A stretch of 64,000 bases of DNA. Source: Styela clava (lineage: Eukaryota). Both the position numbers and the translations under genes were made by a program. Shown in pieces: positions 2,549-56,000 of the stretch (positions are counted from its first letter, which is position 1; each line of letters starts with the position of its first letter). The DNA lies in contig NC_135251.1 in assembly GCF_964204865.1 (NCBI RefSeq), positions 22,630,001 through 22,694,000 of the forward strand, read 5' to 3'. Below the pieces are notes generated by a model. The model ran no database searches. It saw only the letters and a program-made list of their open reading frames with translations, and had not been told where the DNA came from.

Positions 2549-4253
2549 TTCTAGATTACCTGCATATATCTTTATGTAATAGCTAGTATCAAACGTGCTT
2601 GTTTTGTGAACACTTGTAAACGAGGTAGTCGAATTAAAATCCTTAGACAGTTCATTTTGTCCTGTTCCAGAACAAGATTCTGTAATCGTTGATGACAAAT
2701 TTGAGAGATACTTTTGATATGACGTTGTCCTGTTGATATATTATCACCAGAAATAAAATGCACAAGTGGTAATGTTTTGCTGTTAAATAGATTCTAGGAG
2801 TTCTAGGAAATAAACAAATATGTAGCATGTGAAAATTACACATAGTCACGCCAAACTCATTAACCGATACATTAGGTAAATAATTGTCATTTACCTACAA
2901 CTCCAACTGACCAAGCTGGAGCAAAATGTTGCCCTGAGGAATAAGTAGACTCACCATTTTAATAACCGACAGTCGTTCATTATGTATAGCACGTGACTCG
3001 CTATAACAATAATAAAAAATAAAACGAGTAAGAATGCGTTTGCCGCAACTCTGAAATATTCGAGATAAACTTTACTCCAATACTTCCTTGTTCTCTTATT
3101 TCCTCTGCATTGATCTTTCTCGATTCTTCCTAAATTGAGGTTTCACATTTTGATCTTTAACATTTTGCATAGAAGGTAATTTGATTAACAGAACATTACT
3201 CAACTCATATATAAAAGAGAATATATGAATTTCTTCATCAAAAAACCATGAATTACAAACAAATTTGAAAAAAAAATATATCTATATATTCTATTCAGCA
3301 GATTATAAAGGAGGGAACTGGTTACTATAGGCGGTGATGCTAAACGTAACAACCAGCAATTTAAAAATAAAATGGTATTAGATGATATGAACCTCTTTCT
3401 CCTTGTCTTCGATTGATAGATCTGGAACTATAGATGTTTGTGGTGAGTCATGTGAGTTTGCTACCAAGCTAATAGTGGATCCTGTAACTGTTTGTCGTTT
3501 TGCTTAAGTAAATCAAAATAAAAAATATTGTCATTGCTAGTGAAAATGTTTGTTATATTTTATTCTTATTGGATTAAAAACATTTTTTATCATACAAATG
3601 AATGAGAACTTATACCCCCCAAAATTGATTCGTTTTTGTCTTCTTTTTTCCTAAGCAAAACAGCAAAATCAACTGAACTATCCTGAAGTTCGGCATAAGT
3701 TCCGCGAACATATACTCTTCCCTGAATGATGAATACAATTTAGACAAGAATATGATAGGACATGGATACAGAAAAAAATGATTGAATTGCTTTATATGTC
3801 ACACTGATTATAATATAATTGTCTCCACTGGAAGACGATGAGAACAGTTTTTTTTAACCGGAAGTGTATAATAGGATATTGTGTTAAAATGAACGCTATG
3901 AAAACATAAAACCTCTTGAAAATGAGAATCTCATCCACTCTTTTCAATAATTGCAGTTGATGAGTAACGAGTATTCGCGCCTACAGAAGAATAATATAAG
4001 TTTGAATGTTAGCAATGGTATGTAATGTAGCTAAAAGTATGAATACTTCATGGAAAATTAAATATTTACCAGAACCGTAATCAGCAAATCAAATTAATTA
4101 CTTTAAATCTAACAACTGATGTGGTGATTGGTTGTAATAATAATATACTTAAAAATCAACTCCTACCTTCTTTTTCATCATTCCACAGATGCAGTGTTCG
4201 AATATATGACTTGCCACAGGGATATCTACTGCATTCAGTGGATCGTCCAATCA

Positions 4254-4406
<153 letters not shown>

Positions 4407-6763: not shown

Positions 6764-7594
6764 CAGTGGTTCCTAAACTTTTTTTTTTTCGCGACCCCAA
6801 TTTTCATAAAATCAAAACCCACAGATACTCGCGACCCCACAACTAGAAACGTTGAGAAACTTTAAAAAATAGTACTGTATATCAGTTTAATTACCTCAAT
6901 GGGAACAATGTACCTGTATATCGATTGCAAATGGAAGTTGACGGTGAACATTGGCCCAAAAATATACGAACGAGTCCGGCAATGCACCGAAAAACGGGAA
7001 AACTTCGAAGGATTTCATAACACAAGGCATCGTATGAAAACCACGATGTAAAAATATCTTAGATCAGAATTATAACGGTTCTTTGGCGAAACACAGACGG
7101 ACTTGATAAAATGTGGTAGATTGTAATTTTCCTTATTTTAGTCCTATTATCAGTTCGACGACTAGCCAAGAACCTCCCGTAGTATTTATACCTAAAATTA
7201 TGGCCTAACCCTAACCTAGTACACATATTACATTCCGATGTCCGCCATCTTGGTTCGCATACTTCGGGAGCCCCCATAAAAGTAGTATAGGAATAACGTG
7301 TTCGGAATCACATCCTTCAGGTGCTTTTTATTATGCTAGAACTTGTTGGGGTTGTTTGTTTGACAACTCGGAACGCTTCGAAAGTATGTATGAAACAACT
7401 AAATACGCAATATGAGGCGTTTTGGACAAAACACAAGACCGACTCGTAGATTTTGGACACGTGCGCAAATTAACAAAGCGCTTTCGCAACTGATCAAAAC
7501 CTAAAGTGTACCTACTCACTTGTGTGCGCATGCAACCCTTGAAAATTTTCACGCGACCCCGTCCGGGGTCGCGACCCACAGTTTGGAAGCAATG
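6764..7594. mobile_element. hAT-type non-autonomous element in an ABCC intron, carrying a nested partial MITE (~7128-7269)
   Basis: Imperfect TIRs CAGTGGTTCCTAAACT / AGTTTGGAAGCAATG and subterminal CGCGACCCC repeats at both ends. No clear TSD. Confidence 0.6.
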
Positions 7595-7663
7595 AGTTCT
7601 CTTCTGCGAAAAGACGCGCATATAATATTGCTATAAATATGCGATCTTATGTCAAAAAATTGC

Positions 7664-7889
7664 TACTGCTGAAGTATGCGCACCAAGATGGCGGACACCG
7701 GAACGTAGTGTGTGTACCAGATTAGGACATAATTTTGGGTACAAATATTACGGGAGTCACGTGGCTAGTCCCCGAACTCGTAATAGAAATAAAATAAAGA
7801 AAATTGGAATAAAATTATGGCCTAACCCTAACCTGGTACACATACTACGTTCCGTTGTCCGCCATTTTGGTACGCATACTTCAGGAATA
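7664..7889. mobile_element. MITE (TA-flanked, Tc1/mariner-type), family copy 1
   Basis: ~55-bp TIRs CTGAAGTATGCGCACCAAGATGGCGGACA..GTACCAG / CTGGTAC..TGTCCGCCATTTTGGTACGCATACTTCAG, with TA at both ends. Related copies at ~7128-7269, 19446-19678, ~21350-21555 and 59699-59800. Confidence 0.85.
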
Positions 7890-10046
7890 ATAAAAAACTT
7901 GAATGTTATTGCGCCTGATAGAGAGTTAAGCACTAATTATGAATAATTCACTTTAATTTGATCGTTTTCTTGTGCAAAACAATACCACAACCATTATCAT
8001 ACCGAGCCGAGTAATGAGTTGTATGATGAGAGTAACCGAGTTTTTCAACCGAGTAACCGAGAATTTCACAATTGTATTCACAGATTTGCAAACTCAACAC
8101 TTCACTCGATTTTATGACGTCATGCCCTAATTATTACTGCACAAAAGCTTCGAAAAGTAGAGAATGTAATAATTGTAGTAACACTATACTGTAATTGATA
8201 CCGATATTGAACCTATTTAGTTATTAGTATAATTAGGCAATATTTTATGTTTAATAAAAATTTGATTAATATTAGTACAGGTTATGAAAGTGTTGTTCAT
8301 ATAACATACCTTCGACGCTGTTATTGTACCTCCCAAGGCAACATATGCCAATAACGTAACAAAAGTCAGTATTTTATCTTGGCAAACCTAGAAGCAGAAA
8401 TGAAAAGCTTTCACTGAAGACGATAGAATAATTTTTTGAACTTCCTTCCTACAGAACAATTGCATCATGAATATTATGTTTGAAATTTGGTTCGGGAAAA
8501 AAAAAAAATTGGTACACATATGGGATAATATCCATTAAAACTGTAGCACAGTTCCTAGAAAAAAAATTAATTTACGTAACATATAGCAACTGCCGTATAG
8601 ATTGAGTTGTGTACCCTTTTCTGCCACTTACAAAACAAAAAAACAACAACCCGCATACACCCACACCAAGTTGAGATGTAAATGGTGCAGGTAATCAAGA
8701 AGATACTATCGATACACATAACATTCGATATTTGCGGTACAAATGGTACGCACGTTACTTATGGAACATACGATACACACAAGGCAGAATTCGAGACACC
8801 CTGTTACGAATATTTGAATCTCATTGTGTTTGTTCCCTACATCGTTTGCTACACAGAAAGTTTCTCCGTTATATTGCGTATCAAATTATATAGCCTTATT
8901 GAACCAATGTAAATGAAATTACCTCCTAGTGTTCGAAACAAGTTTTGCAAATGGTTTTTCCCAAGCATACATTTTTATAATTCTCATTCCAGTTATTACT
9001 TCGTTCATTAGACGTATGCGTTCATCTGTAATAACCGCTGCCATACTTCTGTATTTCACAAAATAGTGTTAATATTGAAGAATTAGAATACAACGTACAA
9101 CTAGAAAATTGTATGGGCAAAGTGGGACATTTATCTGAAAACAACACAAATATTGAACGCAGGGTATGAAGTTAGTATAAAATAAACACCGCAAACATGA
9201 GTTAACTGCCACGCCAATACAAGTGAATGAAAAAGCAGTAGGATAAAAAATCTGTTATATTTAATGAGGTACGTGTTCAAATGTTTTGGGTGATAGATGG
9301 TTACCTGAATTTGCCGAATGGCCGTCCGGAGAATGTTTGCAAAAACATTATTATAATCAAGACTCCCATTCCAGATAAAGCAACAATTCCAATTTCTTGC
9401 CAGAGTATAATTCCAACAATTAAACATTGCAGCGGTGCGACCCAGAGATAATGCAAAGACATAGGGAGCTAAATAAATAGGCATACACATGTAATATGTA
9501 CAAAACCCTTTTTACAACTAGCAAAAAGAATGCTATCCATGAATTGATATATATGTGTCATTTTTAGATGAACGTCCATTTTGATTGTATAACACTTATA
9601 CCCAAGTGTTTTTTTTGCAAAACAACTGCCAATATGGAGTTGGAAAATACAGTTTTAAAGTTAGCCAGTTTTCTGAATCTAAATCTCGAAATCGGAATTG
9701 GAGTTCATTTTGCTGCGTTTACCGGCTTTTTTAAGGTCACAGTTGGCCGAAACTTAACTGGCCATCTCTGTTACAAGGCTCATTTCATACGTTTATTTTA
9801 TTATTTATTTCTATTGAACGTCATTGACGTGCTGAAAAACGAGAAGAAAAATTTTCATTGGGTCACAAGCTTGAAAAATATATGTATTCGAAAAAATCAG
9901 ATATTTTATATGAGCGTTTGACATTTACTCACCTTATCAAATCGAAGAACATCAGTGGCTCCGAGATTAACTATTTTACCTGTCGTTGTATTATTCAATG
10001 ATTTCTGACTCAAGCGAAGTGTCTGCAAAACGAACTTAATATAGAG

Positions 10047-23509: not shown

Positions 23510-26500
23510 ATGGTCTCCACATTCACCTCCAATAGAAGAGCAATTTTCTTTGTTCTTTTTTTAATGATATCGGTTACAGTATATGTTACAAGATTCTCGG
23601 GATACAGGTGAATGAAAGGAATAAATTTTACTGATTTTACTGTCACTACCAACAACGACGAAATGTATTTTACCACTATAAACTGACTAAATTGCTTGAA
23701 ATTTGATCCACCCATTGTTTTGAAATTTTTAACACACATGTATATTTTCAAAATATAAACAATCTAATTTTGTTGTAGCGTCCACCGCACGAACGAGTGT
23801 AATTCCGTCGGTGCTCCTTCGGTCGTACCAATTGCATTTACGTCTTTAAAACGTACCATATATTCAATATCACTCAAAAACACTAAATGCTGAATATAGC
23901 TTTGGACTCCGTACAGAATTCAAATGAAAAAATGGTAGACAAAGAAAGACTAGTAGCAACTGGGCCAATTGTAGAGGAAGCATTTTATCTCTAAAATTTC
24001 TTCAAAGAGTCTAATTTTATAAGTGTTTGAATTGTCAAAGTTAAAAAAAAAACGTTTAAAAAATTGTTTTGGTTATCAAATTTAGTGTTTATTATTTAAT
24101 ACATTTCAATTTTTCCATTAATAGTTTGAGAATTTAATATTATCAAACCGGTCAATGAATGAAATGATCAGAATGACTAGCTTTATTTGCCACCCTTCGT
24201 TAAAATTTAATATTCAACAAATATATTTTACAAACTAAGAATCAACTTTCAAAATATGGGGAAAGATGCTGTACAAACGATGCAAAAGCATTTTAAAGAT
24301 TACTGGACATCAATTTCTTTTACCACATTAAAAAACGCGACAGAAGAAGGGGGAAAAGATGCATCGATACTTCAGGACGTTTACAAGTAAGATTTCTCAT
24401 CAAACGACATTATTCAAGCCTCGCCGTTAGAATACATAATTTGTTTCAAAATTATTTCATCTTTTTCTATTCTATATTGGAGGCTTATGAAATAATATAC
24501 ACTTGATATGGGAATAGGAAATATGTGTTTTCATAAACAAAAGTGATGTGTGAATGGTTTCAATCTACATTCGGAAGCGAGACCAAGGGGGCTTTGGTCG
24601 ATAGTCTCTTATATTGGGATCTATCACGACGTAAAAAAAAGTCGTGAACAAAATATCTCTACTCTGTTAATTATGTCATTACCGCTGAATTGTCTGAGCT
24701 AATTTTTAGTTAAATAACTAAAGTCGTCACTGCATATACCAGCACGATGACGAATCCAATCAATCAGCGTAATCTTACCAGGTTAAATTAACGATTACAT
24801 CGACAATGATATATTTCTACGCAGTCTAAATAATAGTTTTGTTTATGATACCAAAAATCCTTTTCTCAATTACCAAATAAAATGCAACTGTTGCTTAGAT
24901 TTTTCCTAACATTCATGCCAACACCCTTAATAAACATAAATTTCAGACATCGTAACTTCCGCGATATACACAAGATGTCGAAATCACAAAGATTTATAAA
25001 CTTTGGCAATTAGGTCAACCACATCACATGTAATTAACTGAATTCTAGGCAATTTTTCACTTGTGGCATCGTCAGTATTCTTGCCTTATGCTTATTTTAT
25101 GAGAAAACACACGTCAAGCCGGTCGTAGATTTCATCTTGTACGACCGTAAGTTGTGCACTTAGGGCCTAGAGCAGGGGTCTGCAACCTTTTGTCGCTCGC
25201 GGGCAAAAATTAAGGGCTGCAAGTCATTGGCGGGCCGCACATATTTTTAGAAAGTTGAAAACCGAACGGATGATTGATACTTTTTATAATAAAAATCAAG
25301 CAGTGATACATCTCTCGAATAGAATATAGATTTGTTCCCTCGTGGCAGCTCATAAAAGTCCATTTGAATATTTTCAGCGCCATTGAACCCTTTGCACTTA
25401 CCATCATGTTTCTGCGTTTTGTTGCCATTTGTCTAATCATAATTATTGGACACGTAGTGGACATAACGATCGTTTCAATATTATGTTGTTGTCGTTTTTC
25501 GTCATCATTATCACAAATCGCTTTTCTCTTCGAATACAGGACCAAGTGCATTGAAATTTTCAGTGGTTAAAGATAGGGTTCTCGAGAGGGCTATCACTTT
25601 TATTTTCTTTCAAACTTTCTGTGAATCCCATGAGATTTAATATTTCATCAAATATTTCGCTGTGTTACTTTTTAATCACGGGAACACGATATTTAATCCG
25701 CCAAGCGTGACGGCCAATTCTGGAAAGTCTTTCTCAAAAACTCGGAAGATTTATGAGCTTACCGGTACGCGTAATGTTGTGAACTATTGCTCTGCTTGCT
25801 GTCCATATATTTTCAGACTGCGGTATCTACTGTTATGATACCGTAGTAACTCGAATCAGTTAGTATTTCAACTCAAGTTGAAACGGAATCGTTACAGAAC
25901 CTGGAAAGTCCGTGTACCTGAAAGTCTTCATATTTAAGAGGGTCCCGCAACCTGCAAGATGTTTGATTCGTCTATTGTTTTCAAATTTCTAAAGATGTAA
26001 ATAGCTCTGAAATATGAAACCTTTAATTTTAAGCGTCAACTACACGGCCAAGCTGCAGGACGTGAAATTTCCAACGCTGACGAATGAGAAGTCAAATAAC
26101 GAAAGGTACGTTTTCCAGGTATACTAGTTCTGTATGACCTCATTTTCACCATGTTCATCACATCACATTAAGCTGGAGTTTTGAAATAAAATACCATCAT
26201 TAATAATAATAATGCTCAAGATGTATCATGTATAATTGTTTTCACTTTTTTGTCTCCGAAACTTACAATAAAATGAACGGATTGGCACTGTAAAACGCTA
26301 TATATTGGATACGGCAATTGTAAGGAATATAAGGATGGTTGGTAAGGTTTGGTGAAAGTACGGTCAATTGTAGTCGACCCATTTTTATCTGTAAAAATTT
26401 CATACAGATGTGTTCGAACTGGCTTAATGTTCGCACATATTTTTGGATAAAAAAAACTTTTAAGTTTAGAAATGCTGTTTATTGTTTAATAATATTATAT

Positions 26501-42200: not shown

Positions 42201-43649
42201 TTGTATATTAGATTGAACGCATCCTGCAAATTTTAGTGGAACTTTGTCCCATCCTCCTCCTATTTCAACCAGTTTATTATGTACCAACAAAATATCTTCT
42301 GCCGTGGGCTGTGGAGTTTTTGTATAAATCCATATATATCGCTGACCTGAAACATTAAAGAATAATTGCATACACTAGGCAAATAGAAATTTCCATTTAC
42401 GCCAACCTTTTTTCTTCCAAATTAGTAATTTGTCAAATAGTATTTTAGTAGAGTAGTGAATATTAAATTAATATCTGTTGTGGGTATAGGTACGAATTTG
42501 CATCTTGTAAAAAAGAATTTTCATTGAAATTACTTTTGAATAAATCGTATACTTTTAAGTTACAAAAGTTCCATTTTCACTATTGCTGCAAAAATATCAG
42601 TAAGGATTCTGAGTTTCAAGTAAAAAAATAATTCACAAATTAATCTTAATCGATTCACCCTCTTAGTTGTTACTTTAGACGAGTTAATATCAATTAAGAC
42701 ATCCAATCTATTTTTCACCAGCAAGGCATACTTGCATAAGACATTTAACATTTTACTATATTGTGCCTCGAATCATTTGGCTTTACTGAAAGGACTCAAC
42801 TCAAGCCTAGTTATTGGACACGTAGTGGACATAACGATCGTTTCAATATTATGTTGTTGTTGTTGTTGTTGTTGTTCTTGTTCTTGTTCTTGTTCTTTGA
42901 CACGTTTTTAAAAAGTCGCTTTTCTCTTCGAATACTGGACCAATTGCTTTGAAATTTTCAGTGGTTGAAGATAAAATTTTTCTCCAGAAGGCTATTACTT
43001 TTATTTATTTTAAAATTTCCTGTGGACTTCGAGAGATTCGTTTTTTGTGTTCAAAGAAGTGATCAGAATAAAAAATAGTGACACCTTGTGGCGATTGCGC
43101 GAAGGCATATCAACTGAGAAGCGATCGTAATTCTTGCTCCGCTAAGAGTTGTTTATGGGGAATCGAGATGTTTGGGGTTACCGGTACCGGTACCCGCAAT
43201 GCAGCAATGCAACGGTTTGCGATAACTTCTTAGCTAGTTGACTATTACTACAGCTTCGCTTGCTGACCATATATTTGTTGACTGCGGTATTTACTGTTAT
43301 CAGTTGGTATTTCAAATTATTTCTCAATAAACTCGAAAGGTTTTTGAGGTTAAGTTAAACTACCGGTAGCTATGACAGTCCCTGTGGCCTGTACGGCACG
43401 TACCGGTACCGTTTACAGGTTTACGTACCGTCTTACCGGTACCGTAGTCCGTTACGGTACCGGTACGTAGAGTGTGTGCCTGCATTGAAATTAAGTTTTT
43501 GTAATGAGCCAGCATGTCTGCACAGCTGCTATGCCTTCCTAATTTTTCGCTGTTTCGTTACATTTTTTTGGAAACAACAGTTGCATAAATAGGTATGGTA
43601 CCGTATGCAGAGGAAGAAACTTCACAAAAATTTCAACATGTGCAGCAGG

Positions 43650-44193
43650 TTAGTCGTTAGTGTACATAAATCAGTAAATACAGAAATATGCAGAGGAAAA
43701 GTCTTTACAAAAAGGATGAGATTTACATAATTATCCCGATGGAGAGGAAAGCCTATAGAACGGCTTAACCATATTGCGAACCACAGCCTCTTGTCTGGTT
43801 ACCGGTAAGGTACCATTCCAAGTCTGGTATGGCTGTATGGGATTAGTTAGTTATTTGTTTTCGGAAGCATGGATTTGATTAGTTTAAGTGGCCAGCATAT
43901 CAAATGTCTAATAGTGAAATATTAGTCGTTAGTGTACATAAATCAGTAAATACAGAAATATGCAGAGGAAAAGTCTTTACAAAAAGGATGAGATTTACAT
44001 AATTATCCCGATGGAGAGGAAAGCCTATAGAACGGCTTAACCATATTGCGAACCACAGCCTCTTGTCTGGTTACCGGTAAGGTACCATTCCAAGTCTGGT
44101 ATGGCTGTATGGGATTAGTTAGTTATTTGTTTTCGGAAGCATGGATTTGATTAGTTTAAGTGGCCAGCATATCAAATGTCTAATAGTGAAATA
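43650..44193. repeat. Perfect 272-bp tandem duplication in the Helentron leader intron
   Basis: 43650-43921 equals 43922-44193 (ttagtcgttagtgtacataaatc..atagtgaaata). Confidence 0.95.
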
Positions 44194-44487
44194 TATTTCA
44201 TATTTTCGCTATTTTATCTTTTCCCTTCTTTCTTACAGTTTTGCTGGAAACAACAGATAGGCTAAGGAGAAAGCATTACAACTTCACCAATAATTTTCAA
44301 CGAGATACACAGGTAAGTAAGTCTTAGTGACGCAGCATATCAGGTTCATTCCATTTACATGTTTACTACTACCATACCTGCATCTACACATAAACTTATT
44401 CTATTTCACTTATATGCCTGCAAATATGCCCTGTTCATGCTCATCTTTTTGCTTTTTTGTTACAGTTCTGCTGTAAACAACATAAAT

Positions 44488-47400
44488 ATGCCAAGAAAGA
44501 AGCATTATAACCTTTCCAATAGTGTTCAACATGTTCTGAAATATGGTGGCCGAGGTCTTACCAATACAAAGAATATTTGCTGGGTTAACAGTGTGTTACA
44601 AATATTGGTTCGGCTTCCACTTCATGTACAACATGATTTTCGCTTGTGCTCAATAACACAAGTATGTAATTTCTGCAAGCTGATATCTCTAAGACGCAGA
44701 ATGCTATATTCACCAGCTAAAGCAACAAGACGTATTTCAGCATATGAATTTTCTCTGTTTGTTCACGATTTCCATGCTAGGCCATTTGAAATGTTTGATG
44801 CTGCTGAATTTCTAAGCATGATTTTATCTAAGATTACAGATGACCAAATTAGGTACCATAATGAAGTTGCTAATACCCTCCGTTCTATGTGCCTTTTCTC
44901 AGCATCCATTTTTGAACGGTGTTGCTGTGGTGAATATTCTCGTATCCTCAGTGCAATGACATTTAACATTTTCAATTTCAATCAGGGAGAAAATTTCAAA
45001 GACATTTTAAAGCATCAAGAAGAAATATGTCACAAATGCAATTCTCTTAAATGTGTTAATTATTCATATAGAACATTGCCTTCTGTTTTATTTATTGCAA
45101 TTTGCAGAGTTGATCATGAGCATAAAAAAAATGTTAATACGCTGCGGTATTTTTCTAATCTCGAATTAGGAGGAAACAAATATAAACTTCTTGGTGTTGT
45201 ATCTCACGAAGGATCGACTATTCAGTCTGGTCATTATGTTTCATACTGTTTATCTGGAAATGAGTTCTTCAAATACTGTGATTCGGTTGTAACCTGGTCT
45301 GGCACAGAAAATGTAGAATGTCGGCCAGATGCATGTACACTGTGTTTTGTGAAAACTGATGTGCTATTGGATCCATTGATTTATGATACACCTCCAACAT
45401 CACAAATTCATGATTACTTGGTATCAAACACATACTCCCTTTCAGACTGTTCATTTGCTGCTTCGCAACAGTGCCTTTCTGGAGAGTATGCCGAAAATGT
45501 GGCAAGCAACTCAAATCAAGGGAAAGATTTCAAGATGTTTGATGCTCCTGAAAAGTCACTGACAGACGTTTCCTCAGACCATTCCTTTGACTCTTCTCTG
45601 CTACCTGCTGATGAGAATAGTGGATGTGCGACAAACAATTCAGACAACAATATAACGACTGTAGAAATTTTATTTCAAACATGTAACACTATGAAAAGAC
45701 ATCGACGTCAACACAATATTCAAAAAGCTGGAACAATTAAAACAAAAAAGGCATTGTATTATCAGAAAAATGCTGGAACTATTAGAAAAAAGCAAGCAAT
45801 CTATGATGCTAATAATGCTGGGACCATTAGAAAAAAACGAGCGTTGTATAATGTGGTCAATGCTGGTGCCATTAGAAAAAAGCAAGCAATCTATGATGCT
45901 AATAATGCTGGGACCATTAAAAAAAAACAAGCATTGTATAATGTGGTCAATGCTGGTGCCATTAGAAAAAAGCAAGCAATCTATGATGCTAATAATGCTG
46001 GGACCATTAAAAAAAAACAAGCGTTGTATAATGTGGTCAATGCTGGTGCCATTAGAAAAAAGCAAGCAATCTATGATGCTAATAATGCTGGGACCATTAA
46101 AAAAAAACAAGCATTGTATAATGTGGTCAATGCTGGTGCCATTAGAAAAAAGCAAGCAATCTATGATGCTAATAATGCTGGGACCATTAAAAAAAAACAA
46201 GCGTTGTATAATATGATCAATGCTGGGACTATTAGAAAAAAACAAGCGCTGTATAATATGATTAATGCTGGGACTATTAGAAAAAAACAAGCGCTGTATA
46301 ATATGATTAATGCTGGGACAATTAGAAAAAAACAAGCGCTGTATAATATGTTTAATGCTGGGACTATTAGAAAAAAACAAGCGCTGTATAATATGTTTAA
46401 TGCTGGGACTATTAGAAAAAAACAAGCATTGTACAATGACATTAATGTTGCTACAATCAGACAAAAACAAACGAAATATAATCACAAGAATGCTCTCAAA
46501 ATTAGGAAAAAAAGAATAGAATATTATCGTCAAAAGAAATGGCCACAGAAACAGATGTTTTACAATTTTGCCAAGCTTGATAACCTATGTTTCATCCAGG
46601 AGAAGTATCGCTATGTGAACGCAAGAAATCTCAACCTACATAGACAAACACTTTGTTCATTACCTTACACAAACTTGGAATTTAGGAGAAGGGTATTGTA
46701 CACCCACAAACATTTAAAACTAATTCATCTCAAACAAAGAAAGTTTACTTCTGACTTCAATTCTAGACAAAAACAGTATCAACTTGCTAAAGTCGTTAAT
46801 AAATCCTATTTGGCAGCTTTTCAGCATGCCCGTCAAGCATTGCTACAAGGACCAGTATACGTTTGTGTTTGTTGTGCACGGCTACTTTTCAAAAAGGCTG
46901 TAAAACAAGTTAATATGGTCCGCTTCAAGAACCTTGAAAAAGTGGACCAATGTCTTTCCAGCATGGAATCCTTTGATGGAGTTGAATGGATATGTTCATA
47001 TTGTGTAACATATTTAAACAAGGGCAAAATGCCGCCAATGGCTATTGCTAATTCATTGTCTCTAGATGCCATACCCGACGAGTTATCTTGTTTGTCAACA
47101 ATTGATGAGCATTTGCTGAAATTGCAAATTCCTTTTGCAAAAATAGGAAACCTTGTGAGGGGACAAAAAAGGATTAAAGGTCCTGTAATTAATGTGCCTT
47201 CAGAGGTTCAAAAAACAGTGTCGGTACTTCCCAGATGTGTCAATGACAATCATTTTCACCCGATTCAGTTGAAAAGAAGGTTAAAATACACTGGATATTA
47301 TAAGTTCCGCATGTCCAATATATACAATGTTTTAAAGGGTCTTACATGGCTCAAAGTACACAATGATCTCTATAGAAAAATTGAGCTTAATGGTAACATT

Positions 47401-50400
47401 AACGTTCATGAAATAGACCCTTTTGCACACAATGATAATATTGATTCTCCTGGTTCTGAAATCGGAGAAATGAATGAAAATTATATTCGGGGTTCCAATC
47501 CTGTTCCAATTGGAAATAGATTGCTAAACAATTCTGCTGAAGACCCAGTGGATGTATGCAAATCAGAATCACCAGTTACATCAGGTGATGAAATGGAGGT
47601 GCAAGGTGGGTGTGTCTTAGACAGTTGCATGCAACCTGTGAATGGGCCTTTGGCTGCTGCGGACACAGTCATCCACAGAATGGCGGATTCTTTACACAGC
47701 ACTATTATAATTGCACCTGCCGAGGCGAATGCGCCTACAAATTTTTTTGATCCCATAAGTAAGACACAAGAAGAAGAGAGCTTTCCGAAGTTTTTTCCTT
47801 TCGGGTGTGGAGGTTATCACTCAGCAAGAGAGATGCCATGCTCTTTCACGACCTATATAAATTGCAGATTAAGAAATGTGGATGGAAGGTTTCGGGATTT
47901 GACCTACCTTTTTTGGTGCCAATATGTGAAAGAAATTCTTCAGATTCGTGGGGTACAATCTGTTTATTTGCGGCAGATGCTCACCAGAGGTGTTAATACA
48001 AAACAGCATATTCATGAAAAAGGTGGTTTGGAAAACCTTATTAATTCCGATGCTGCATTCAATGCATACAAAACTATCAGAGGTACTCCTGCATATTGGC
48101 AGAACAAGAAAAAGGATGTTTTTGCAATGGTCAGACAATTAGGGAAACCTCATATATTTTTCACTCTTAGTGCAGCCGAAACAAGGTGGTCAGAGCTTTG
48201 GCAAATATTACATCGTGCAAAGTTCAAAAAAGATCTGTCTGAAGAATCTGCCCTCGGTTTATCATATACGGAAAAAATGAAACTCATACAAGATGATCCA
48301 GTTACCACAGCTTTGTATTTTCATCATCGTGTTACAGAGGTCCTCAAGTTTGTCAAATCGCCATGTAAACCATTGCTTTGCGCAGTTAAAGACCATTTTT
48401 ATCGAGTTGAATTTCAGGCAAGAGGCTCGCCACATGTCCATGGCTTAATATGGTTAGACATCGGCAATAATGATAATGATACCATTGTCCAATACACAGA
48501 GAAGATTATCAGTTGCTCTATTCCTGATGCACAAAATGATCCTGAACTATACAAGCTCGTCACTGCACTACAAGTACATCATCACACATCTACCTGTTTG
48601 AAAGGCAATAATGCCGGTACTTGTAGATTTTTCTATCCAAGATTACCTTTGCCACAAACAATGCTTTTATCAGGCATACCCGATTCCACCTCCGATGCAG
48701 ATATCAGAAAATTCAAAAGAATTAGGAATAAGCTCCAGGAAAAGCTGTGTGACCTACTACAAAATTCTAATGATACTGAAGTTTCATTTATAGATTTTTT
48801 AAAATTATGTGACGTTGACGAAGAAACGTATATAAATGCCATAAAAACATCTATTAAAGGCGAAGCAGCAATTTTTTTAGGTAGAAAGACATCAGAGGCT
48901 TTTGTTAATAATTATAATCCGAATATTCTCAGGCTACATCAAGCTAACATGGATATTCAATTTATTGTTGATGAGTATGCTTGTGCTAATTACGTATTAT
49001 CTTATATAAATAAGAATGAAAGTGGTATGTCAAAACTACTGAACGAACTGAATGAAGAAGCCAAAACTTCCGGAAGCACAATGAAGGAGCGTTTGCGATC
49101 TTTAGGCAATTGTTGGACACATCACAGAGAGGTGTCAGCACAAGAAGCTGCGTATCGCGCTCTGAGCATCCCTTTGGCAGCTTCATCAAGGATAACTAAA
49201 TTCATTCCCACGTCTCCGATGCAGAAAAGGTATGCTTGTTTAAAGCAAAACTGGTCTGAACTTCCTGAAACTGAAAATGTATTGAAAAATGGTGTCATTG
49301 AATACTACATATGTCGGCCAATTGAATTGGAAAATACCTCGCTTGCAGAATTTGTTGCCAATTATGATATTATGCCTGGTACAATATCTGGTGACATCAC
49401 AGAAACAGAAGAAGGGGAAAATTTTAACCACAATTCAAACAATCGTGCTGAACAACGTTCAAATATTTTGCAGATGAAAGAAAACATGGGATGCCTCAGA
49501 AAACGTAGGAAGGAAGCAGTTTTGAAGTACTTTCGCCATTACAAGACTGCTGCTGAAGAATCCTTTGCACTATGTATCCTTTTTGTTCCTTGGCGAAATG
49601 AGTCTGTTGATTTGGGCAATACCAACATGCTTTGTGACAAGAGAAAAACGACCATTTTGCAGCAGTTGCGTCATTTCGAAAAAAATGCTTCGTTCGAACA
49701 TCTCGTGAATAACATTTTGAATGAACTACCGGAGGATCAACTTGAGGAACATTTTGAATATGAAGAGACAACAGATGAGAAAGATATCAACAATCACATA
49801 TCAACTCGACTGATGTCTGCACCTCGGATTCTTCATGCAAAGGAAGACATTTTGATTTCTTTGCGTAAATTAAATATTTTACAAAGAGAGTTTTTCGATG
49901 ATGTTCTTGCACATTTAAAAACTCCGGAAAATGAGAGAAAATCGAAGTATGTTTTTCTTTCTGGTGGCGCAGGGACAGGAAAATCATTCGCTCTTCAAGT
50001 GCTTACACAGGCTATCGATTATACTCTTATGCAGAGGGCAGATGTGGATCCGGAAGAAATCAGGTGGCTTGTGGTTGCACCTACTGGTTGTGCAGCTTTT
50101 AATGTTAACGGCTCAACTATACATTCGGCCTTTGGCATCCCAATGTTAGGAAGTACCAGGTCATATTGCAAACTTTCAAATGATAAATTGAACAGCTATA
50201 TGCGAAAATATTTCTATTTACAAGTCTTGTTCATCGACGAAATTAGCATGGTTGGTGCTACATTGTTCTCATGGATTGACCAGCGACTGCGAGAAATAAA
50301 AAAAAGTAATATTTCGTTTGGGAATGTTTCAGTTATAGTTATAGGTGACTTATTCCAACTTCCACCTGTAATGGATTCATGGATTTTCTGTACTCCAACT

Positions 50401-51606
50401 ATTCATGGAGAAGCAGGTTGCTTGTCTACTAGTATATGGTCGAAATTTTCCCTGATCGAATTGACGGATATATTAAGGCAAAAAAATGATCTTGAATTTT
50501 GCCAGATTTGCAACAGAGTGAGAGAAGGAAAGCAAACTCAAAATGACATTGACTTCTTTAACAAGAAACTTCACACAGTATGTCAACAGGAAGATACTAT
50601 TTGTACACTGCTTTTTAAAGAAAATGCATTTGTCGATCAGTATAATGCCCAAAAATTAGCATCACTTGATAGTGAAGTTGTAGAGTTTTTTTCAGTTGAT
50701 GTTTCAGCAGATACTATGGAGAAGTGTGACATACCTGCTTCCTTGCCTCTTTCTAGAACAGCAGGTCTTTCCAGAAGTCTTCAACTAAAGGTTGGTTGTC
50801 CAGTTATGGTCACATGCAATGTTGATACCAAATGTGGTCTTACAAACGGAGTACGGGGAGTCGTGCAACATTTAGAAAATACTAACAGTATGGTCGTGTG
50901 GGTAAAATTTGATGATCCAGCTATCGGAAATACTATTCGAAATAAAACCCGTTTGCAGAGGCCAGACAACTTCTCTGTGCCTATTGTGCATTTGAAATGC
51001 AATTTTTTATACAAGAAAAAAACTGTAAGTCGTCGACAAATACCATTACGTTTGTGTTTTGCTTTGACAGTTCATAAAGCGCAGGGGCAGACACTTGATG
51101 GGGCAATCATATCGATGGATGGTAAGAGACGCACAGTTGAAAATGGTCTTTTTTATGTTGCGATAACCAGAATAAGATCAAGCAATCATTTGCACTTAAA
51201 GAATTTCAACGAAAGTTACATCAGAATCAGTGCACAAGTGTCACAAGAAATGAAAAGACTTCGGAGCAAACTATATGATTATTGTGAAACACCATTACGA
51301 ATAAAGACACACAGAAAAGAAATTTCAATTTCATACTTGAATATCTCATCTCTTAGAAAACACATTAATGATTTGAAATCTGACTTCAATTTATTAGATT
51401 CAACAGTTCTATGCATTGCAGAAACCTGGCTTAGGCCATCGGATTCTGGTCCAAATTACTACTTGGAAAATTTCAACATTTTAGAAAGATTTGATGGACT
51501 TATTCAGACAAATGGAAAAGGATTGCTTCTTTATTCAAAAAGTAATATCAGATATTCAATATACAACTCTGGAAATGACGAAATTCAGTGGATCATGGCA
51601 ATATAG
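44488..51606 (+). CDS. Helentron polyprotein: USP/C19 protease - 15-aa repeats - Cys-rich/DUF6570-like region - HUH Rep - PIF1 helicase - AP endonuclease N-half
   Basis: USP: GLTNTKNICWVNSVLQ, DAAEFL, YKLLGVVSHEG..SGHY, YCDSVV. Rep: FFTLSAAE, YRVEFQARGSPHVHGLIW (the Ser is Helentron-type), YVLSYINK. PIF1: SGGAGTGKS, VAPTG, IDEISMV, GDLFQLPPV, RQKND, TVHKAQGQTL, YVAITR. EN: YLNISSL, IAETWL, GLLLY. The ATG at 44488 follows a splice acceptor at 44465, so the track's 44359 start is probably intronic. Confidence 0.93.
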   Translation: MPRKKHYNLSNSVQHVLKYGGRGLTNTKNICWVNSVLQILVRLPLHVQHDFRLCSITQVCNFCKLISLRRRMLYSPAKATRRISAYEFSLFVHDFHARPFEMFDAAEFLSMILSKITDDQIRYHNEVANTLRSMCLFSASIFERCCCGEYSRILSAMTFNIFNFNQGENFKDILKHQEEICHKCNSLKCVNYSYRTLPSVLFIAICRVDHEHKKNVNTLRYFSNLELGGNKYKLLGVVSHEGSTIQSGHYVSYCLSGNEFFKYCDSVVTWSGTENVECRPDACTLCFVKTDVLLDPLIYDTPPTSQIHDYLVSNTYSLSDCSFAASQQCLSGEYAENVASNSNQGKDFKMFDAPEKSLTDVSSDHSFDSSLLPADENSGCATNNSDNNITTVEILFQTCNTMKRHRRQHNIQKAGTIKTKKALYYQKNAGTIRKKQAIYDANNAGTIRKKRALYNVVNAGAIRKKQAIYDANNAGTIKKKQALYNVVNAGAIRKKQAIYDANNAGTIKKKQALYNVVNAGAIRKKQAIYDANNAGTIKKKQALYNVVNAGAIRKKQAIYDANNAGTIKKKQALYNMINAGTIRKKQALYNMINAGTIRKKQALYNMINAGTIRKKQALYNMFNAGTIRKKQALYNMFNAGTIRKKQALYNDINVATIRQKQTKYNHKNALKIRKKRIEYYRQKKWPQKQMFYNFAKLDNLCFIQEKYRYVNARNLNLHRQTLCSLPYTNLEFRRRVLYTHKHLKLIHLKQRKFTSDFNSRQKQYQLAKVVNKSYLAAFQHARQALLQGPVYVCVCCARLLFKKAVKQVNMVRFKNLEKVDQCLSSMESFDGVEWICSYCVTYLNKGKMPPMAIANSLSLDAIPDELSCLSTIDEHLLKLQIPFAKIGNLVRGQKRIKGPVINVPSEVQKTVSVLPRCVNDNHFHPIQLKRRLKYTGYYKFRMSNIYNVLKGLTWLKVHNDLYRKIELNGNINVHEIDPFAHNDNIDSPGSEIGEMNENYIRGSNPVPIGNRLLNNSAEDPVDVCKSESPVTSGDEMEVQGGCVLDSCMQPVNGPLAAADTVIHRMADSLHSTIIIAPAEANAPTNFFDPISKTQEEESFPKFFPFGCGGYHSAREMPCSFTTYINCRLRNVDGRFRDLTYLFWCQYVKEILQIRGVQSVYLRQMLTRGVNTKQHIHEKGGLENLINSDAAFNAYKTIRGTPAYWQNKKKDVFAMVRQLGKPHIFFTLSAAETRWSELWQILHRAKFKKDLSEESALGLSYTEKMKLIQDDPVTTALYFHHRVTEVLKFVKSPCKPLLCAVKDHFYRVEFQARGSPHVHGLIWLDIGNNDNDTIVQYTEKIISCSIPDAQNDPELYKLVTALQVHHHTSTCLKGNNAGTCRFFYPRLPLPQTMLLSGIPDSTSDADIRKFKRIRNKLQEKLCDLLQNSNDTEVSFIDFLKLCDVDEETYINAIKTSIKGEAAIFLGRKTSEAFVNNYNPNILRLHQANMDIQFIVDEYACANYVLSYINKNESGMSKLLNELNEEAKTSGSTMKERLRSLGNCWTHHREVSAQEAAYRALSIPLAASSRITKFIPTSPMQKRYACLKQNWSELPETENVLKNGVIEYYICRPIELENTSLAEFVANYDIMPGTISGDITETEEGENFNHNSNNRAEQRSNILQMKENMGCLRKRRKEAVLKYFRHYKTAAEESFALCILFVPWRNESVDLGNTNMLCDKRKTTILQQLRHFEKNASFEHLVNNILNELPEDQLEEHFEYEETTDEKDINNHISTRLMSAPRILHAKEDILISLRKLNILQREFFDDVLAHLKTPENERKSKYVFLSGGAGTGKSFALQVLTQAIDYTLMQRADVDPEEIRWLVVAPTGCAAFNVNGSTIHSAFGIPMLGSTRSYCKLSNDKLNSYMRKYFYLQVLFIDEISMVGATLFSWIDQRLREIKKSNISFGNVSVIVIGDLFQLPPVMDSWIFCTPTIHGEAGCLSTSIWSKFSLIELTDILRQKNDLEFCQICNRVREGKQTQNDIDFFNKKLHTVCQQEDTICTLLFKENAFVDQYNAQKLASLDSEVVEFFSVDVSADTMEKCDIPASLPLSRTAGLSRSLQLKVGCPVMVTCNVDTKCGLTNGVRGVVQHLENTNSMVVWVKFDDPAIGNTIRNKTRLQRPDNFSVPIVHLKCNFLYKKKTVSRRQIPLRLCFALTVHKAQGQTLDGAIISMDGKRRTVENGLFYVAITRIRSSNHLHLKNFNESYIRISAQVSQEMKRLRSKLYDYCETPLRIKTHRKEISISYLNISSLRKHINDLKSDFNLLDSTVLCIAETWLRPSDSGPNYYLENFNILERFDGLIQTNGKGLLLYSKSNIRYSIYNSGNDEIQWIMAI
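45724..46533 (+). repeat. Coding minisatellite: 18 x 45 bp (15 aa, NAGTIRKKQALYNxx), partly organised as 90-bp dimers
   Basis: Directly visible: alternating ..QAIYDAN / ..QALYNVV dimers with a 90-bp period, then 45-bp ..QALYNM(I/F) monomers. Confidence 0.95.
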
Positions 51607-52314
51607 ATGATCTAATTTGCTGTTTCGTATATTTCCCACCAGGAACTGCTTTGTATATGATGTCTGATTTGTTCTTATCATGGTTCAGTTCTCAAACAGT
51701 ACCGGATTTAATCATTGGTGATTTCAACAAGTCAACTGCAGAAATGGAAGTGTTATCATCAAAATACTCCTTGCTGTGTTTGACAGAAAGCAAGACTACT
51801 AGAGGTTCAAGGGATATCGATCACATTTTCTGGAGGAAATCTGATCACATGTCGGTATCTGCACAAGTTTACAATGTGTTCTACTCTGATCATGATGCAG
51901 TTTCAGTACGTGTGGAAAAAAGGGAAAACTCAATGCTTCTTTGCAATGTGGAACTACCAACAGGTAAGGATAATATGATTTCTGATACAGAAGTATTTCA
52001 AATGTGTTTTTTTCATATTGTTGAGGAAATTAAAATGACACTGTTGCAATGAGAAATATACTTTTGTCATCTCCCACATAAAACCCAACCTTTATATGTG
52101 ACAATCTCATCTAATAAATGTAAAGTATTATTTGGCAGTGAGAAATTTTATTTTTATTTTTTTTCATCAAAATCCAACTATACCCCAGTTTGTCTTATGT
52201 ACTGTGTACATTTTTTATGATGCTGTAATCTGTTTAGTTTTATCAAATATAATTTATTATTATTCACTTCATTTTAAAATCAATACATTGTTATTTGCAG
52301 ATGTGATAATTTGA
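51588..52314 (+). CDS. C-terminal half of the Helentron AP endonuclease (-1 frame relative to the main ORF)
   Basis: CFVYFPP, IIGDFN, TTRGSRDIDHIFW and YSDHDAV are APE motifs. Adding one A at ~51600 fuses it to the main ORF. A probable intron 51964-52300 would end the protein ..ELPT/DVII*. Confidence 0.8.
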
Positions 52315-52724
52315 TAGCTGCTGAGCGTGAAACCATTCCTACAATTGTGAGCTGATGTGAAGAACCCCACCACCAAACATTTAAGCTTGAAATTCTTACT
52401 AGAGTTAGCTCGTCAAGTGCAATATTTTTCATGTTATATGTGTAAGAGCTATTATTGACATATTCTAATAAGTGGGAGTGGAGAATGTACTAGCATTGTC
52501 AATGTCTGATATTTTTCATGGTTTGAATACAATGTCTTCAGTCTCATATTAAACTTTGAGTTATAACACCAATGGTCCTCACCAATGAACAACTTCGTAA
52601 AACATGCTGTTTTCGTGAGTCTGGTTTTGAATGATTGAGTTCATTTAAATTTATAGTGTAACATTAAAAACTGGCTGATGTAAGTATCGCTGGATTTATT
52701 TCAAAGACACTTATGACAGATGAA

Positions 52725-53040
52725 TTTTTCTGTGGGTAATCTGATCATATGTCAGCATCTGCACAAGTTTATAATGTCCTCCACTATTTTAATGAGTCAA
52801 TGACGTAGGTATGTGCCAAATCATATCAAGTTTATTTACATGTTTACTCTTACTGCATTTGCAGTCAATGTTTATGCTCATTTTTTAGCCTTTTTTCATT
52901 ACAGTTCTGCGGTAAACAACATCAATATGCTAATAAAGAAGCATTACAATCTTTCCAATAGTGTTCAACATGTTATGAAATATGGTGGTCGCGGTTTCAT
53001 CAATGCAAAAAATATTTGCCGGTTTAACAGCGTGATGCAA
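52725..53040 (+). pseudogene. Diverged internal duplicate: EN 3' fragment joined to the USP-start exon
   Basis: 52725-52777 resembles 51826-51877. 52800-53040 resembles 44328-44601 and reads SSAVNNINMLIKKHYNLSNSVQHVMKYGGRGFINAKNICRFNSVMQ. Confidence 0.85.
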
Positions 53041-56000
53041 TTATTGCAAATAGTTTTCGTGTCCATATATTTGAGCATTGCTCTCTTGTCTTGAATATCC
53101 TCAAATACTTGTAAACTTACCGTCTTTTCCACATTGGAGCCACATTACGTAATTCTCGTAATTTGACACGTGATCTACTTCAATACGATACCAGCGATCA
53201 ATCTCTGAAAAATATATTTTTGGACACTGTAGTGGACCTATGGATCGTTTCAATATTATGTTGTTGTTCTTTGACACTTTTTGGACACCTAGTGAAAAAT
53301 CTAAAAAGTCGCTTTTCTCTTTGATTACTGGACCAATTGCCTTAAATTTCTTAGTGGTTAAAGATGATTTTTTTCTCCAGAAGGCTATTACTTTTATTTA
53401 TTTCAAATATTTCTGTTAGCTCTGTGAAATTTGTTTTTGTTTGCTATGACACCGAACGTTCTGCGGACGCCTATGCTGGCACTCCTCTTCATGTTCTTTT
53501 GATCACGTGCCATCGAACGTCGTTGGTTTGTAACTGAATCCTTGCTTCGCTAAGATTTGAGGAATGGTGAATAGAGAATAGGGCCGTACGTGGTGTTATA
53601 TTGCAGTAGTGACTCGGATAGTTGGTATTACTACAGTTGTGAGTCGGACCATCTTGCAATTTCAATTCACGCTGTCACAAGACAGGAACTGCTGAAGATA
53701 GGGCAGTTCCGGTACCGTAACACAGCGCAGTGACACTGAACTAACTCGTATCTGTCTGGTAAAAGCGGGGCTTGTATTTTAAATTTTGTTCCAATAATGA
53801 AGAAGGGAATGAAACGGATTACTTAGTATTTCAATTCATGTTGCAATTGAATGGAGAAGAATAGATCATTGCCTGGTGAGTAGTCTGTGTAGTCGAATTA
53901 TCCATCAGCCCTAAACGTTTATGACAGTCACTGTACCGAAATTTGTACCCCGATTCAGGTGGTTTTAAGTTGACGCATGTTATTTAGTAACGTTTTATGT
54001 GAAATGTTCGACTGTGGTTCGGTACCTGATCCGGTAATACGGTACATAATTGACTCATATTACGAGATATTTCAATTGATGTTTTAATATAATCGAGAAT
54101 AATGGATCATTGTCACAGGATCTAAAATATCTACGACAGTCCCTGTACCGTCACAGTACCCCGATACAGGTACTGGTAAATCACCGCATATGATTTTTTG
54201 GGGAATTGTTCTGCGTGTCCATATATTTGAGCATTACTCTCTTGTTATTGATATTTTACTATAATTCAGTAATACCATGAATCGATTCAATTATGTGTCA
54301 TATTTCTATGACTATATGGTTTGATAGAGTGCTCCAAACTACTATTCCTCTCTCTATGCTTAATTGTAAGTGCAGTGATTCTCTAACTTTTATGGTACAC
54401 CCTTCCGAACACTCTTAACACTTGCGGTCACCTGCTCTTGATTTGCGTTTAATGGTCGGTCAGTTTGTTCGCCACGTTTAAGAATGGAAAACTCAACAAA
54501 CAAAAAAAAAGGAGAAATGCATTAAATTCAAAGAATTAAAAAAAACCACAGTTGATTTACTTTAAATCATTGTAGTTATCGTGGATGGTACTTGCGACGA
54601 TATTTACCTGTGATCCTCAGAGAATTGCTCTGTGGCCCCGAGGGCCCAGTTTGACAAATCCCGTGTTAGAGGGATTCGTATGCGATTAATGTAATGATAG
54701 TGTAGCTAGAATTAACATCACACTTTCACAAACATTTGTTATGTAACGATTTGTCTAACCAGAGTCAGACTTCCTCAGACAATCAGTTCACAATAATCAT
54801 TTAGTTTAAATCTAAGACGAAATGTTACAAGACAAAATATTTGAAAGCGTGATGCAAGAAATTTGAACCATTCAGCATTTAAAAAAAATAATTACATTAG
54901 TTTTACAACTACTTTTTTACCTTTAAACGCGTCTTTTTTTTGTCCCATCTTTTTTGCAGCATCAAGCCATAAAAACTCTGAATACATACATATATAAGTT
55001 AATTTGACATGATTAATTTGACAAAATATGGTATATATATATAAAAAAAAAGTCAGAAATACCTTATTTCGGGTCCAGGTTGTCAATGGAGTTTCCTCTT
55101 GTATACCAATGTACTGGTACGAAATCATATTTTTTAAATCCTCTTTGAAACGAAATAATAGTAAAATATTAGCAGTATATAATTTTAATGAATTGCTGAG
55201 AGTGAATCTGAATGAAAAATCGAATTCGCAAAGTTTTATTGAAAACTTTCAACTAATTCACGAGTACAGATGCTTAAAAATTAAAATGCCTTGGCAGATT
55301 ATGATTTATGATTGGAAAATTAATTAATCCAATACGTTTCTTTTTACATTTGAGAAGTAGACTTACTCTGGGGTAGTATAACTGTGCTTGAATTCGACGT
55401 CAACACCCTTGGAGGTTTCTTTGGCATTTATGAACGACCAGCAAGGAGCCTCTCTCACGAATACATCGCCAACATTCAACACCTGGTACCATTCATCAGG
55501 GAACTGTCAAAGAAACTTTACAATTTTATTCAACTTCAATTAGTTAATTACGAATTTACATTTTTGAATTTATTCTCTCCTAAAATACAATTGGTTGCTT
55601 CTAGGGCTGCAGTATGAACGATGCAGTGGTTTACAGGAAATTCGCTAGATGGCGCAGTTTCTACAGCAAAACCTTTCAGAACTCTATTACTGTACCTTTC
55701 TCGGATTGACTGTGACACACCTTACTATTAAAATTCATACGATATTTGGGTGCATTTCTCTCGATGGGAATAAGGCTAAGACACGCTGCTCTGGCACACA
55801 ATCACATCGAAATTTTTGACTAAGGGATCAATAGGTAATAGGGGCAAAGGTATCTCAGACTGTTTTACTACATATAATTTCAAAACTACGGGTATTGGTT
55901 GTATCAGGTATAACCTTGTACAAAGTTCGTTTGAGTGAAAGCAAGACGACGAAATAATATAGATAAGAGGAAACACTGCAAACTGGACTTCTTCTGCTTG

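Follow-up and report, generated by a model that had tools for sequence, protein, structure and literature searches.

Most VTD domains found outside viruses sit in the open reading frames (ORFs) of Helentrons, and some of these ORFs also hold an OTU domain (Erven et al. 2022, PMC9741609). The VTDs of zebrafish Helentrons react with Ub-PA and cleave Ub-AMC, ubiquitin chains of the K48, K63 and K11 types and also NEDD8, and their proposed role is to shield transposition proteins from proteasomal degradation (PMC9741609). The same study points out that no OTU domain from a transposon has ever been put to an assay. Of the deubiquitinases that rolling-circle transposons carry, VTD is the only type with demonstrated activity. 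Here we describe a Helentron of Styela clava whose transposase begins with a domain of a third class, the USP. This is the best understood class of deubiquitinase and it occupies the same position on the same chassis as VTD or OTU in other Helentrons. The element lies in a window of 64,000 nucleotides (the whole stretch of DNA that was analysed, positions 22,630,001 to 22,694,000 of contig NC_135251.1 in assembly GCF_964204865.1). As judged from sequence comparison and a structural model, the USP domain is genuine and the deubiquitinase probably active.

The presence of such a domain in this type of element is not in itself new. The HELIANO survey (Li et al. 2024, NAR, PMC11417382) includes Pfam UCH among 20 domains that are stably found in Helitron-like elements. 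UCH occurs almost only in the HLE2 group, where it is enriched in subgroups c and d (mostly lungfish and axolotl); the endonuclease and Herpes_teg_N are enriched in HLE2 subgroup b. It is also counted among the domains that are mostly encoded in ORFs separate from that of the Rep-helicase (RepHel), and the survey gives no catalytic analysis or assay of it. Beyond HELIANO, our literature search found no paper linking Helitrons with USP or UCH domains. The initial annotation of the window, made from the sequence alone, knew of no USP-type domain characterised in Helentrons, and its claim of novelty is weakened by the HELIANO entry. The bare association of UCH with Helentrons is already published, but not a USP joined in frame at the N-terminus of an endonuclease-type chassis, the analysis of its active site, the swap against VTD+OTU within one genome or the evidence for repeated USP acquisition.

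The element can be compared with three described systems. In the VTD Helentrons (zebrafish DrT1 and DrT2), as here, an N-terminal papain-fold deubiquitinase shares a single ORF with DUF6570, Rep, PIF1 and an AP endonuclease, autonomous copies keep the catalytic residues, and the transposition machinery is what the module is presumed to protect. However, the VTD fold is unrelated to the fingers-palm-thumb fold of USPs, and activity has been assayed for VTD but is predicted for the window USP. OTU Helentrons, which carry the classical Helentron cysteine protease, have the same position and chassis but a different deubiquitinase family; many of the closest Rep-helicase relatives of the window element belong here. 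The UCH-bearing HLE2 elements of HELIANO, compared by description only, show the same association of PF00443 with a Helentron; in the window element USP, RepHel and endonuclease belong to one ORF, whereas UCH is mostly found in separate ORFs in the HELIANO set.

The USP domain and the protein that carries it

The USP domain (peptidase C19, Pfam UCH) is encoded at 44551..45309 (+). It matches Pfam PF00443 with E=6.8e-23 (82 bits against a cut-off of 23.9), and the intact copies of the element elsewhere in the genome match as well. A phmmer comparison with PDB chains aligns Ubp8, USP15, Ubp6 and USP9X across both the Cys and the His boxes (for example, the Cys box GLTNTKNICW with GLINMGNTCF of Ubp8). 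We aligned the domain with 31 single-domain relatives (alignment A1) and used the same alignment to build an AlphaFold2 model, which has a mean pLDDT of 83.8 and a pTM of 0.86. In a Foldseek search of the PDB more than 460 chains match this model at E<=1e-3, and the listed rows are all USPs. The top matches are USP35, USP36, Ubp8, USP12, USP18, USP46 and USP1 (E 3e-18 to 1e-15, TM 0.69-0.74). The domain as modelled has the USP fingers-palm-thumb fold. The initial annotation had proposed a USP (C19) domain fused to a Helentron Rep-helicase, and the profile match, the model and the structural matches all bear this out. The motifs that it quoted are all present in the + strand translation: the Cys box GLTNTKNICWVNSVLQ, DAAEFL, ERCCCG, CHKC, LPSVLFIAICR, the His box VSHEGSTIQSGHY and YCDSVV.

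The catalytic Cys codon is at 44578..44580 (+), within the NICW of the Cys box. It aligns with Cys146 of Ubp8 and has the oxyanion Asn five residues upstream. The catalytic His codon is at 45232..45234 (+), within the SGHY of the His box. The third and fourth critical positions are the Cys-Asp pair of YCDSVV (45277..45282, +), which has Cys in place of Asp, Asn or Ser, followed by the conserved Asp. In alignment A1 the oxyanion Asn (N12), the catalytic Cys (C17), the Asp of DAAEF and the catalytic His (H235) are invariant columns, and the Asp of YCDSVV (D251) is nearly invariant. The nucleophile column holds C in 87 of 89 aligned relatives and the His-box column H in 146 of 146. At the third position, which is aligned in 130 of the 150 best relatives, the residues are D (60), N (53), C (7), S (6), F (3) and A (1); at the fourth position, 129 of 130 aligned relatives have D.

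Cellular compact USPs (USP35, USP36, Ubp8, USP12/46, USP18 and USP1) share the fold and the active-site boxes, and the ubiquitin docking predicted for the window USP is of the canonical kind. The window USP differs from them in sequence (17-23% identity), in its Cys at the third position and in its fusion to a transposase. It is also minimal (250-290 amino acids) and, unlike cellular USPs, has no insertions or accessory domains.

We also co-folded the domain with ubiquitin of the host itself, using the sequence encoded by the polyubiquitin gene of contig 5. The predicted complex has an ipSAE of 0.79, against 0.44 for the best control; the mark applied is reached by 51 of 78 solved complexes and by 2 of 108 mismatched pairs. 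The runs share at least 94% of their contacts and the partner pLDDT is at least 87. In the model, the fingers contact the Ile44 patch of ubiquitin, and residues 70-76 of ubiquitin are in contact with the Cys box, the His box and the DAAEF loop. The host ubiquitin differs from the human protein at positions 19 and 28, both of which are Ser. Upstream of the polyubiquitin gene (20797279-20799090), at about 20750000-20791000, contig 5 also carries a cluster of many divergent ubiquitin-domain ORFs, in frames of about 235-246 amino acids with two or three ubiquitin-like domains each.

The main ORF of the window copy occupies 44488..51606 (+), from a conserved start (MPRKK) to a premature stop. The ORF as defined mechanically is slightly larger (44359-51606, +, 2,415 amino acids), but its upstream ATG at 44359 lies in sequence that is found only in the window copy, and the other copies start with MPRKK. 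We therefore consider MPRKK at 44488 to be the true start, as the initial annotation had implied. Along the protein the order is USP, basic repeats of 15 amino acids, DUF6570, HUH Rep, PIF1 helicase and AP endonuclease. In the 2,415-residue ORF, Pfam places UCH at residues 65-317, DUF6570 at 888-1011, Helitron_like_N at 1167-1364 and PIF1 with its 2B and C-terminal domains at 1838-2271. In the translation, an acidic, Ser-rich linker joins the USP domain to the basic repeats. These correspond to an in-frame 45-bp tandem repeat at 45727..46470 (+), with about 15 basic units of 15 amino acids (NAGTIRKKQALYN..). The number of units varies from 10 to 15 among otherwise near-identical copies. The repeat region has no significant Pfam match, and a role in nuclear localisation or DNA binding would be only a guess.

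DUF6570 (47020..47391, +; Pfam E=6.7e-16) located upstream of Rep is a marker of the Helentron (HLE2) group (HELIANO, PMC11417382). The HUH Rep endonuclease (Helitron_like_N; 47857..48450, +; Pfam E=4e-29) has HVH and YxxxY (YVLSY) motifs that are readable in the translation. It is followed by a PIF1-type helicase with 2B and C-terminal domains (49870..51171, +; Pfam PIF1 E=5e-28, Pif1_2B, UvrD_C_2) and a Walker A motif, GAGTGKS. The AP-type endonuclease (Exo_endo_phos; 51340..51998, +) is split in the window copy and intact in two copies on contig 8. A Pfam scan of the full protein does not list it at E<=1e-3, but it is above threshold when the C-terminus is scanned alone: PF03372 matches the C-terminal 260 amino acids of intact copy B with E=6.3e-7 (29.8 bits against a cut-off of 24.5). 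Sequence matches in the PDB between the endonuclease C-terminus and ETV6 are spurious, due to low complexity, and were rejected. The profile order expected at the outset (UCH, Helitron_like_N, PIF1, then Exo_endo_phos) is the order found, the last of these in the intact copy.

A one-off capture, a possibility raised with the original proposal, is not what the genome contains. The USP is in frame in all four copies of the autonomous family, in which it is 98-100% identical, and the whole frame is intact in two of them. Older, decayed copies (42-80% identity) still carry it, including YCDSVV with its Cys. Against old pseudogenised copies, the ratio of non-synonymous to synonymous substitution rates (dN/dS) is 0.17-0.60, with a synonymous excess (Fisher p=3e-6, 2.5e-3 and 4e-5); neutral decay of the old copies pushes this ratio upward. 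These comparisons indicate that the USP is a stable, selected part of the element under purifying selection.

There is no close USP paralogue in the host genome, where the next best match is 23% identical. An exhaustive HMMER scan of 1.84 billion representative proteins returned six matches below 1e-10 and no close relative. The top matches (P0001, P0002, P0004 and P0006) were considered as relatives of the fusion and rejected: they are gene models from vertebrates for tandem arrays of the USP17/USP18-like type, with 3 to 10 UCH domains, and not Helitrons. As far as sequence searches reach, the source of the USP is not traceable and its capture is not recent. Compact USP-domain proteins are common in giant viruses (Nucleocytoviricota; ESM Atlas rows and P0115), and one match fuses an mRNA-capping enzyme with UCH. 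This similarity of features is only a lead on the origin of compact USP modules.

Predicted activity and alternative explanations

We consider it likely that the domain is an active, trans-acting isopeptidase for ubiquitin (or a ubiquitin-like protein) tethered to the Rep-helicase, and infer this from the sequence, the models and the analogy with the VTD Helentrons. The fingers would bind the body of ubiquitin, and its C-terminal tail would thread to Cys31 and His249 (numbered from MPRKK), with Asp265 giving oxyanion and histidine support. Most likely, the enzyme would strip degradative or signalling ubiquitin off the transposase, or off host factors for replication or repair where transposition takes place. 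Removal of this ubiquitin would stabilise the transposition machinery, a role like that proposed for the active VTDs of zebrafish Helentrons. Of the roles put forward in the initial annotation, protection of the transposase and ubiquitin stripping at replication or repair sites, both of them trans-acting, are plausible.

A number of observations weigh against an active enzyme of this kind. The third residue of the triad is Cys and not the canonical Asp or Asn, and no human USP has Cys there. The first zinc knuckle is CCC, not CxxC (the second pair, CHKC, is canonical); several active USPs function without zinc binding. The initial description of the protease as 'catalytically complete' is thus correct for the Cys, the His, the oxyanion Asn and the near-invariant Asp but not for the third residue or the first knuckle. 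Similarly, the proposed 'Asp motif' YCDSVV does keep the near-invariant Asp, but the preceding, canonical third position is a Cys. The docking result may reflect memory of solved USP-ubiquitin complexes; because such complexes are already solved, it is a likeness and not a proof of binding. The four young copies differ by only 3-8 substitutions per pair, which is too few for dN/dS alone, and the comparison between copies suggested at the outset was informative only against the old ones. The window copy is itself probably non-autonomous, because its endonuclease is frameshifted. Finally, any statement on the substrate, on specificity among ubiquitin-like proteins or on the biological role is purely conjectural.

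The Cys at the third position is unusual and a minority natural variant. It nevertheless appears compatible with activity, because the third residue is dispensable in several human USPs (USP1, USP15, USP40 and USP48), in which the adjacent fourth Asp is essential (Keijzer et al. 2024, PMC10867860). In addition, USP16, USP30 and USP45 carry Ser at the third position and are active (PMC10867860).

The same Cys, together with the atypical zinc ribbon, would also suit a pseudo-deubiquitinase, that is, a catalytically dead or weak ubiquitin-binding module that would bring the transposase to chromatin or replication factors carrying ubiquitin. Binding accounts for the fold and the predicted docking as well as catalysis does. 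However, pseudo-enzymes usually lose the nucleophile, and the window USP retains it. Young and old copies alike keep the catalytic Cys and His, the oxyanion Asn and the fourth, essential Asp, and the residue that has changed is one that several human USPs can dispense with (PMC10867860). Of the alternatives this is the one that survives best, but we consider it unlikely.

An enzyme specific for a ubiquitin-like modifier (ISG15-like, NEDD8 or Fubi), which would counter a host defence pathway, is suggested by the presence of USP18 (ISG15-specific) and USP36 (cross-reactive with Fubi) among the best structural matches. The structural scores of these two are, however, not separable from those of ubiquitin-specific USPs. 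The best sequence matches include the vertebrate USP18-like and USP17-like tandem arrays, and Helentron VTDs cleave NEDD8 in addition to ubiquitin (PMC9741609), but the docking was passed with ubiquitin, the sole partner tried. We regard such a specificity as improbable.

The initial annotation had also suggested that the protease might process its own polyprotein, a USP acting in cis to cut the protein of about 2,500 amino acids into USP, Rep-helicase and endonuclease products. The N-terminal position in a very long single ORF would fit, and viral papain-like proteases, which double as deubiquitinases, offer an analogy. However, USPs need the folded ubiquitin body for substrate binding, and Pfam reports no ubiquitin-like domain in the Helentron protein. 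Reading of the translation shows no LRGG-type site either: the GG dipeptides (YGGRG, VQGGC, GCGGY and SGGAG) have no Leu-x-Gly-Gly context. In addition, the substrates on which VTD domains act in related Helentrons are free ubiquitin substrates (PMC9741609). Self-processing is therefore very improbable. The least probable explanation of all is passive capture, in which the USP would be a piece of a host gene without any function for the element; the argument for it is the known capacity of Helitron-like elements for gene capture (PMC11417382). However, every autonomous copy has the USP joined in frame to the beginning of its transposase, old and diverged copies also carry the domain, it is under purifying selection, and it has no close host paralogue (next match 23%) and no close relative among the 1.84 billion representative proteins.

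Exchange of the deubiquitinase module between Helentrons

A query extending from DUF6570 to the helicase identifies 496 proteins, of which the best 120 are 32-34% identical and come largely from marine invertebrates. The genera among these Rep-helicase relatives include Pinctada, Crassostrea, Solemya, Oculina, Paramuricea, Holothuria and Ptychodera (bivalves, corals, a sea cucumber and an acorn worm). The precomputed Pfam lists of the best 120 of the 496 carry PF02338 (OTU) or PF04843 (Herpes_teg_N/VTD), and PF00443 is absent from them. In three relatives that we re-scanned, OTU or VTD is located N-terminal to DUF6570, in the same place as the USP.

The genome also contains a second Helentron family, 38% identical in Rep, with at least three frames of 2,448-2,579 amino acids, all on the + strand (1257-8867 of locus L037 on contig 10, 1137-8855 of L038 on contig 4 and 850-8175 of L039 on contig 1). 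In L037 and L038, the two that were scanned, VTD (residues 25-174) and OTU (residues 289-376) precede DUF6570, Rep, PIF1 and the endonuclease. The start of this family, MPRKR, resembles the MPRKK of the USP family. The two families are collinear from about residue 773 to the end, at 30% identity, and their N-terminal 770-820 or so amino acids are unrelated. The alignment indicates that the chassis is shared between the families and the deubiquitinase module exchanged. Three copies of the second family are located within 25 kb on contig 4 (10520341-10546754).

The initial annotation had suggested that this lineage acquired its deubiquitinase independently. That suggestion has held up: the relatives carry OTU or VTD, and the N-terminal 770 or so amino acids are unrelated to those of the VTD+OTU family. 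These comparisons support a separate acquisition of the window USP, unconnected with that of OTU or VTD in related Helentrons.

A further USP-bearing lineage, known from JGI metagenome contigs of 5.7-7.5 kb, is represented by P0095 and P0272, which fall into one cluster. Both are likewise endonuclease-type Helentrons with an in-frame USP, but here Rep, PIF1 and the endonuclease come first and the USP is at the opposite, C-terminal end. It is only 25% identical to the window USP and ranks 95th among the matches of the USP search. The helicase of P0272 is 41% identical to that of the VTD+OTU family, and in a maximum-likelihood helicase tree P0272 groups with this family from the S. clava genome (SH-aLRT 99). 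The same tree places the window family outside all of the 34 other relatives of the endonuclease type. Forcing the two USP-bearing lineages together costs 122 log-likelihood units (approximately unbiased (AU) test, p=0.00019), with long branches as a caveat. Since monophyly is rejected and the domain occupies opposite ends of the protein, the tree and the domain order indicate at least two independent acquisitions of a USP by Helentrons.

A broader proposal would be that the need of endonuclease-type Helentrons for a tethered deubiquitinase is so strong that at least three unrelated folds (OTU, VTD and USP) have come to fill the slot independently, with USP doing so two or more times (at the N-terminus here and at the C-terminus in P0272), and that the USP with Cys at its third position is fully active, with a linkage or substrate preference of its own. 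We put this forward tentatively, as something just short of an even chance. If the slot is indeed refilled by unrelated folds, this would amount to a natural swap experiment on what deubiquitination does for transposition. A USP in this position in any case strengthens the argument that selection is for deubiquitinase activity itself and not for a particular fold, and turns the association between Helentrons and deubiquitinases into a convergent and testable pattern. The host carries intact, near-identical copies of the USP element and many recently mobilised derivatives alongside an intact VTD+OTU family, and so offers two natural and comparable constructs for studying deubiquitination in rolling-circle transposition.

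Ends, copies and derivatives of the element

The boundaries of the element were set by aligning four loci (the window copy and copies A, B and C) in the 377-Mb assembly to which the window belongs. The whole copy of the autonomous Helentron in the window is 10,279 bp long (42811..53089, +); homology with the three other genomic copies begins and ends exactly at these positions, and the flanks of the four are unrelated to each other. The first and last bases are T in all four copies. This is consistent with insertion between T and T, although the junction is not proven. No target-site duplication is visible at the four-copy boundaries, and these give no support to an 11-bp target-site-like duplication with permuted ends at 42750-54263, which was rejected.

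At the 5' end, direct reading of the sequence shows a terminal TGGACACG (42815..42822, +), one side of a Helentron-style asymmetric terminal inverted repeat whose partner is subterminal at the 3' end. The 3' end has a stem-loop (12-nt arms, 26-nt loop) followed by CGTGTCCA (53008..53065, +). This CGTGTCCA is an inverted copy of the 5' terminal TGGACACG and is located 24 nt before the 3' terminus. The ends are of the Helentron type and, with Rep, PIF1, DUF6570 and the endonuclease also present, the element at 42811-53089 is an endonuclease-type Helentron.

At the level of the element, the four copies in the genome are 97-100% identical. A search of the whole assembly with the USP domain returns the same number of copies, at 98-100% protein identity, together with many decayed fragments at 42-94%. 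In both contig-8 copies a single unbroken frame (2,483 and 2,528 amino acids) starts at MPRKK and takes in the whole endonuclease, and the second copy on contig 2 has two frameshifts. The single Rep-helicase-endonuclease ORF described in the initial annotation is therefore real in the contig-8 copies but not in the window copy, in which the endonuclease is out of frame. Compared with the three other copies, the window copy lacks one base pair after nt 51598; as a result the ORF stops at 51606, splitting the endonuclease, and the remainder of this domain lies in ORF 51588-52052. The 5' untranslated part of the window copy also carries an exact 272-bp tandem duplication (43650..44194, +; Tandem Repeats Finder, 2.0 copies, 100% identity) that occurs in this copy only. 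More window-copy-specific 5' sequence, absent from the other three copies, is found at 43557-43699 and 44175-44439.

The Rep domain of the USP family is found at only four loci in the genome. In contrast, the 3' end is present dozens to hundreds of times: of 762 candidate places for its terminal 150 bp, 41 were scored, and every one of these matches at 93-100% identity, with 11 being 100% identical. Because this 3' end is both common and near-identical while Rep is restricted to four loci, the comparison indicates that the USP Helentron is a young, recently active family with many non-autonomous derivatives.

All copies carry, within their 3' terminal region, an internal duplicate (52869..53046, +) of the region around the start of the ORF (44432-44607), to which it is 85% identical. 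The duplicate includes a degenerate Cys box and is kept in all autonomous copies and in truncated derivatives. Given this duplicate, a short USP-like 'relic' elsewhere in the genome will often be no more than the 3' end of a Helentron. For annotation purposes, isolated 'USP relics' in this genome are thus often fragments of Helentrons and not host genes.

Partial 5' ends of related elements are present in the window at 53217-53416 and 25443-25623, and are 83-98% identical to 42811-43024. One of them begins 128 bp downstream of the 3' end of the element and could be a truncated tandem or nested insertion. Elsewhere in the genome, contig 16 carries a Helitron-like element without DUF6570 or endonuclease (locus L040, 2198-3727 and 3799-8853, +), in which a separate ORF with STPR DNA-binding repeats precedes the RepHel ORF.

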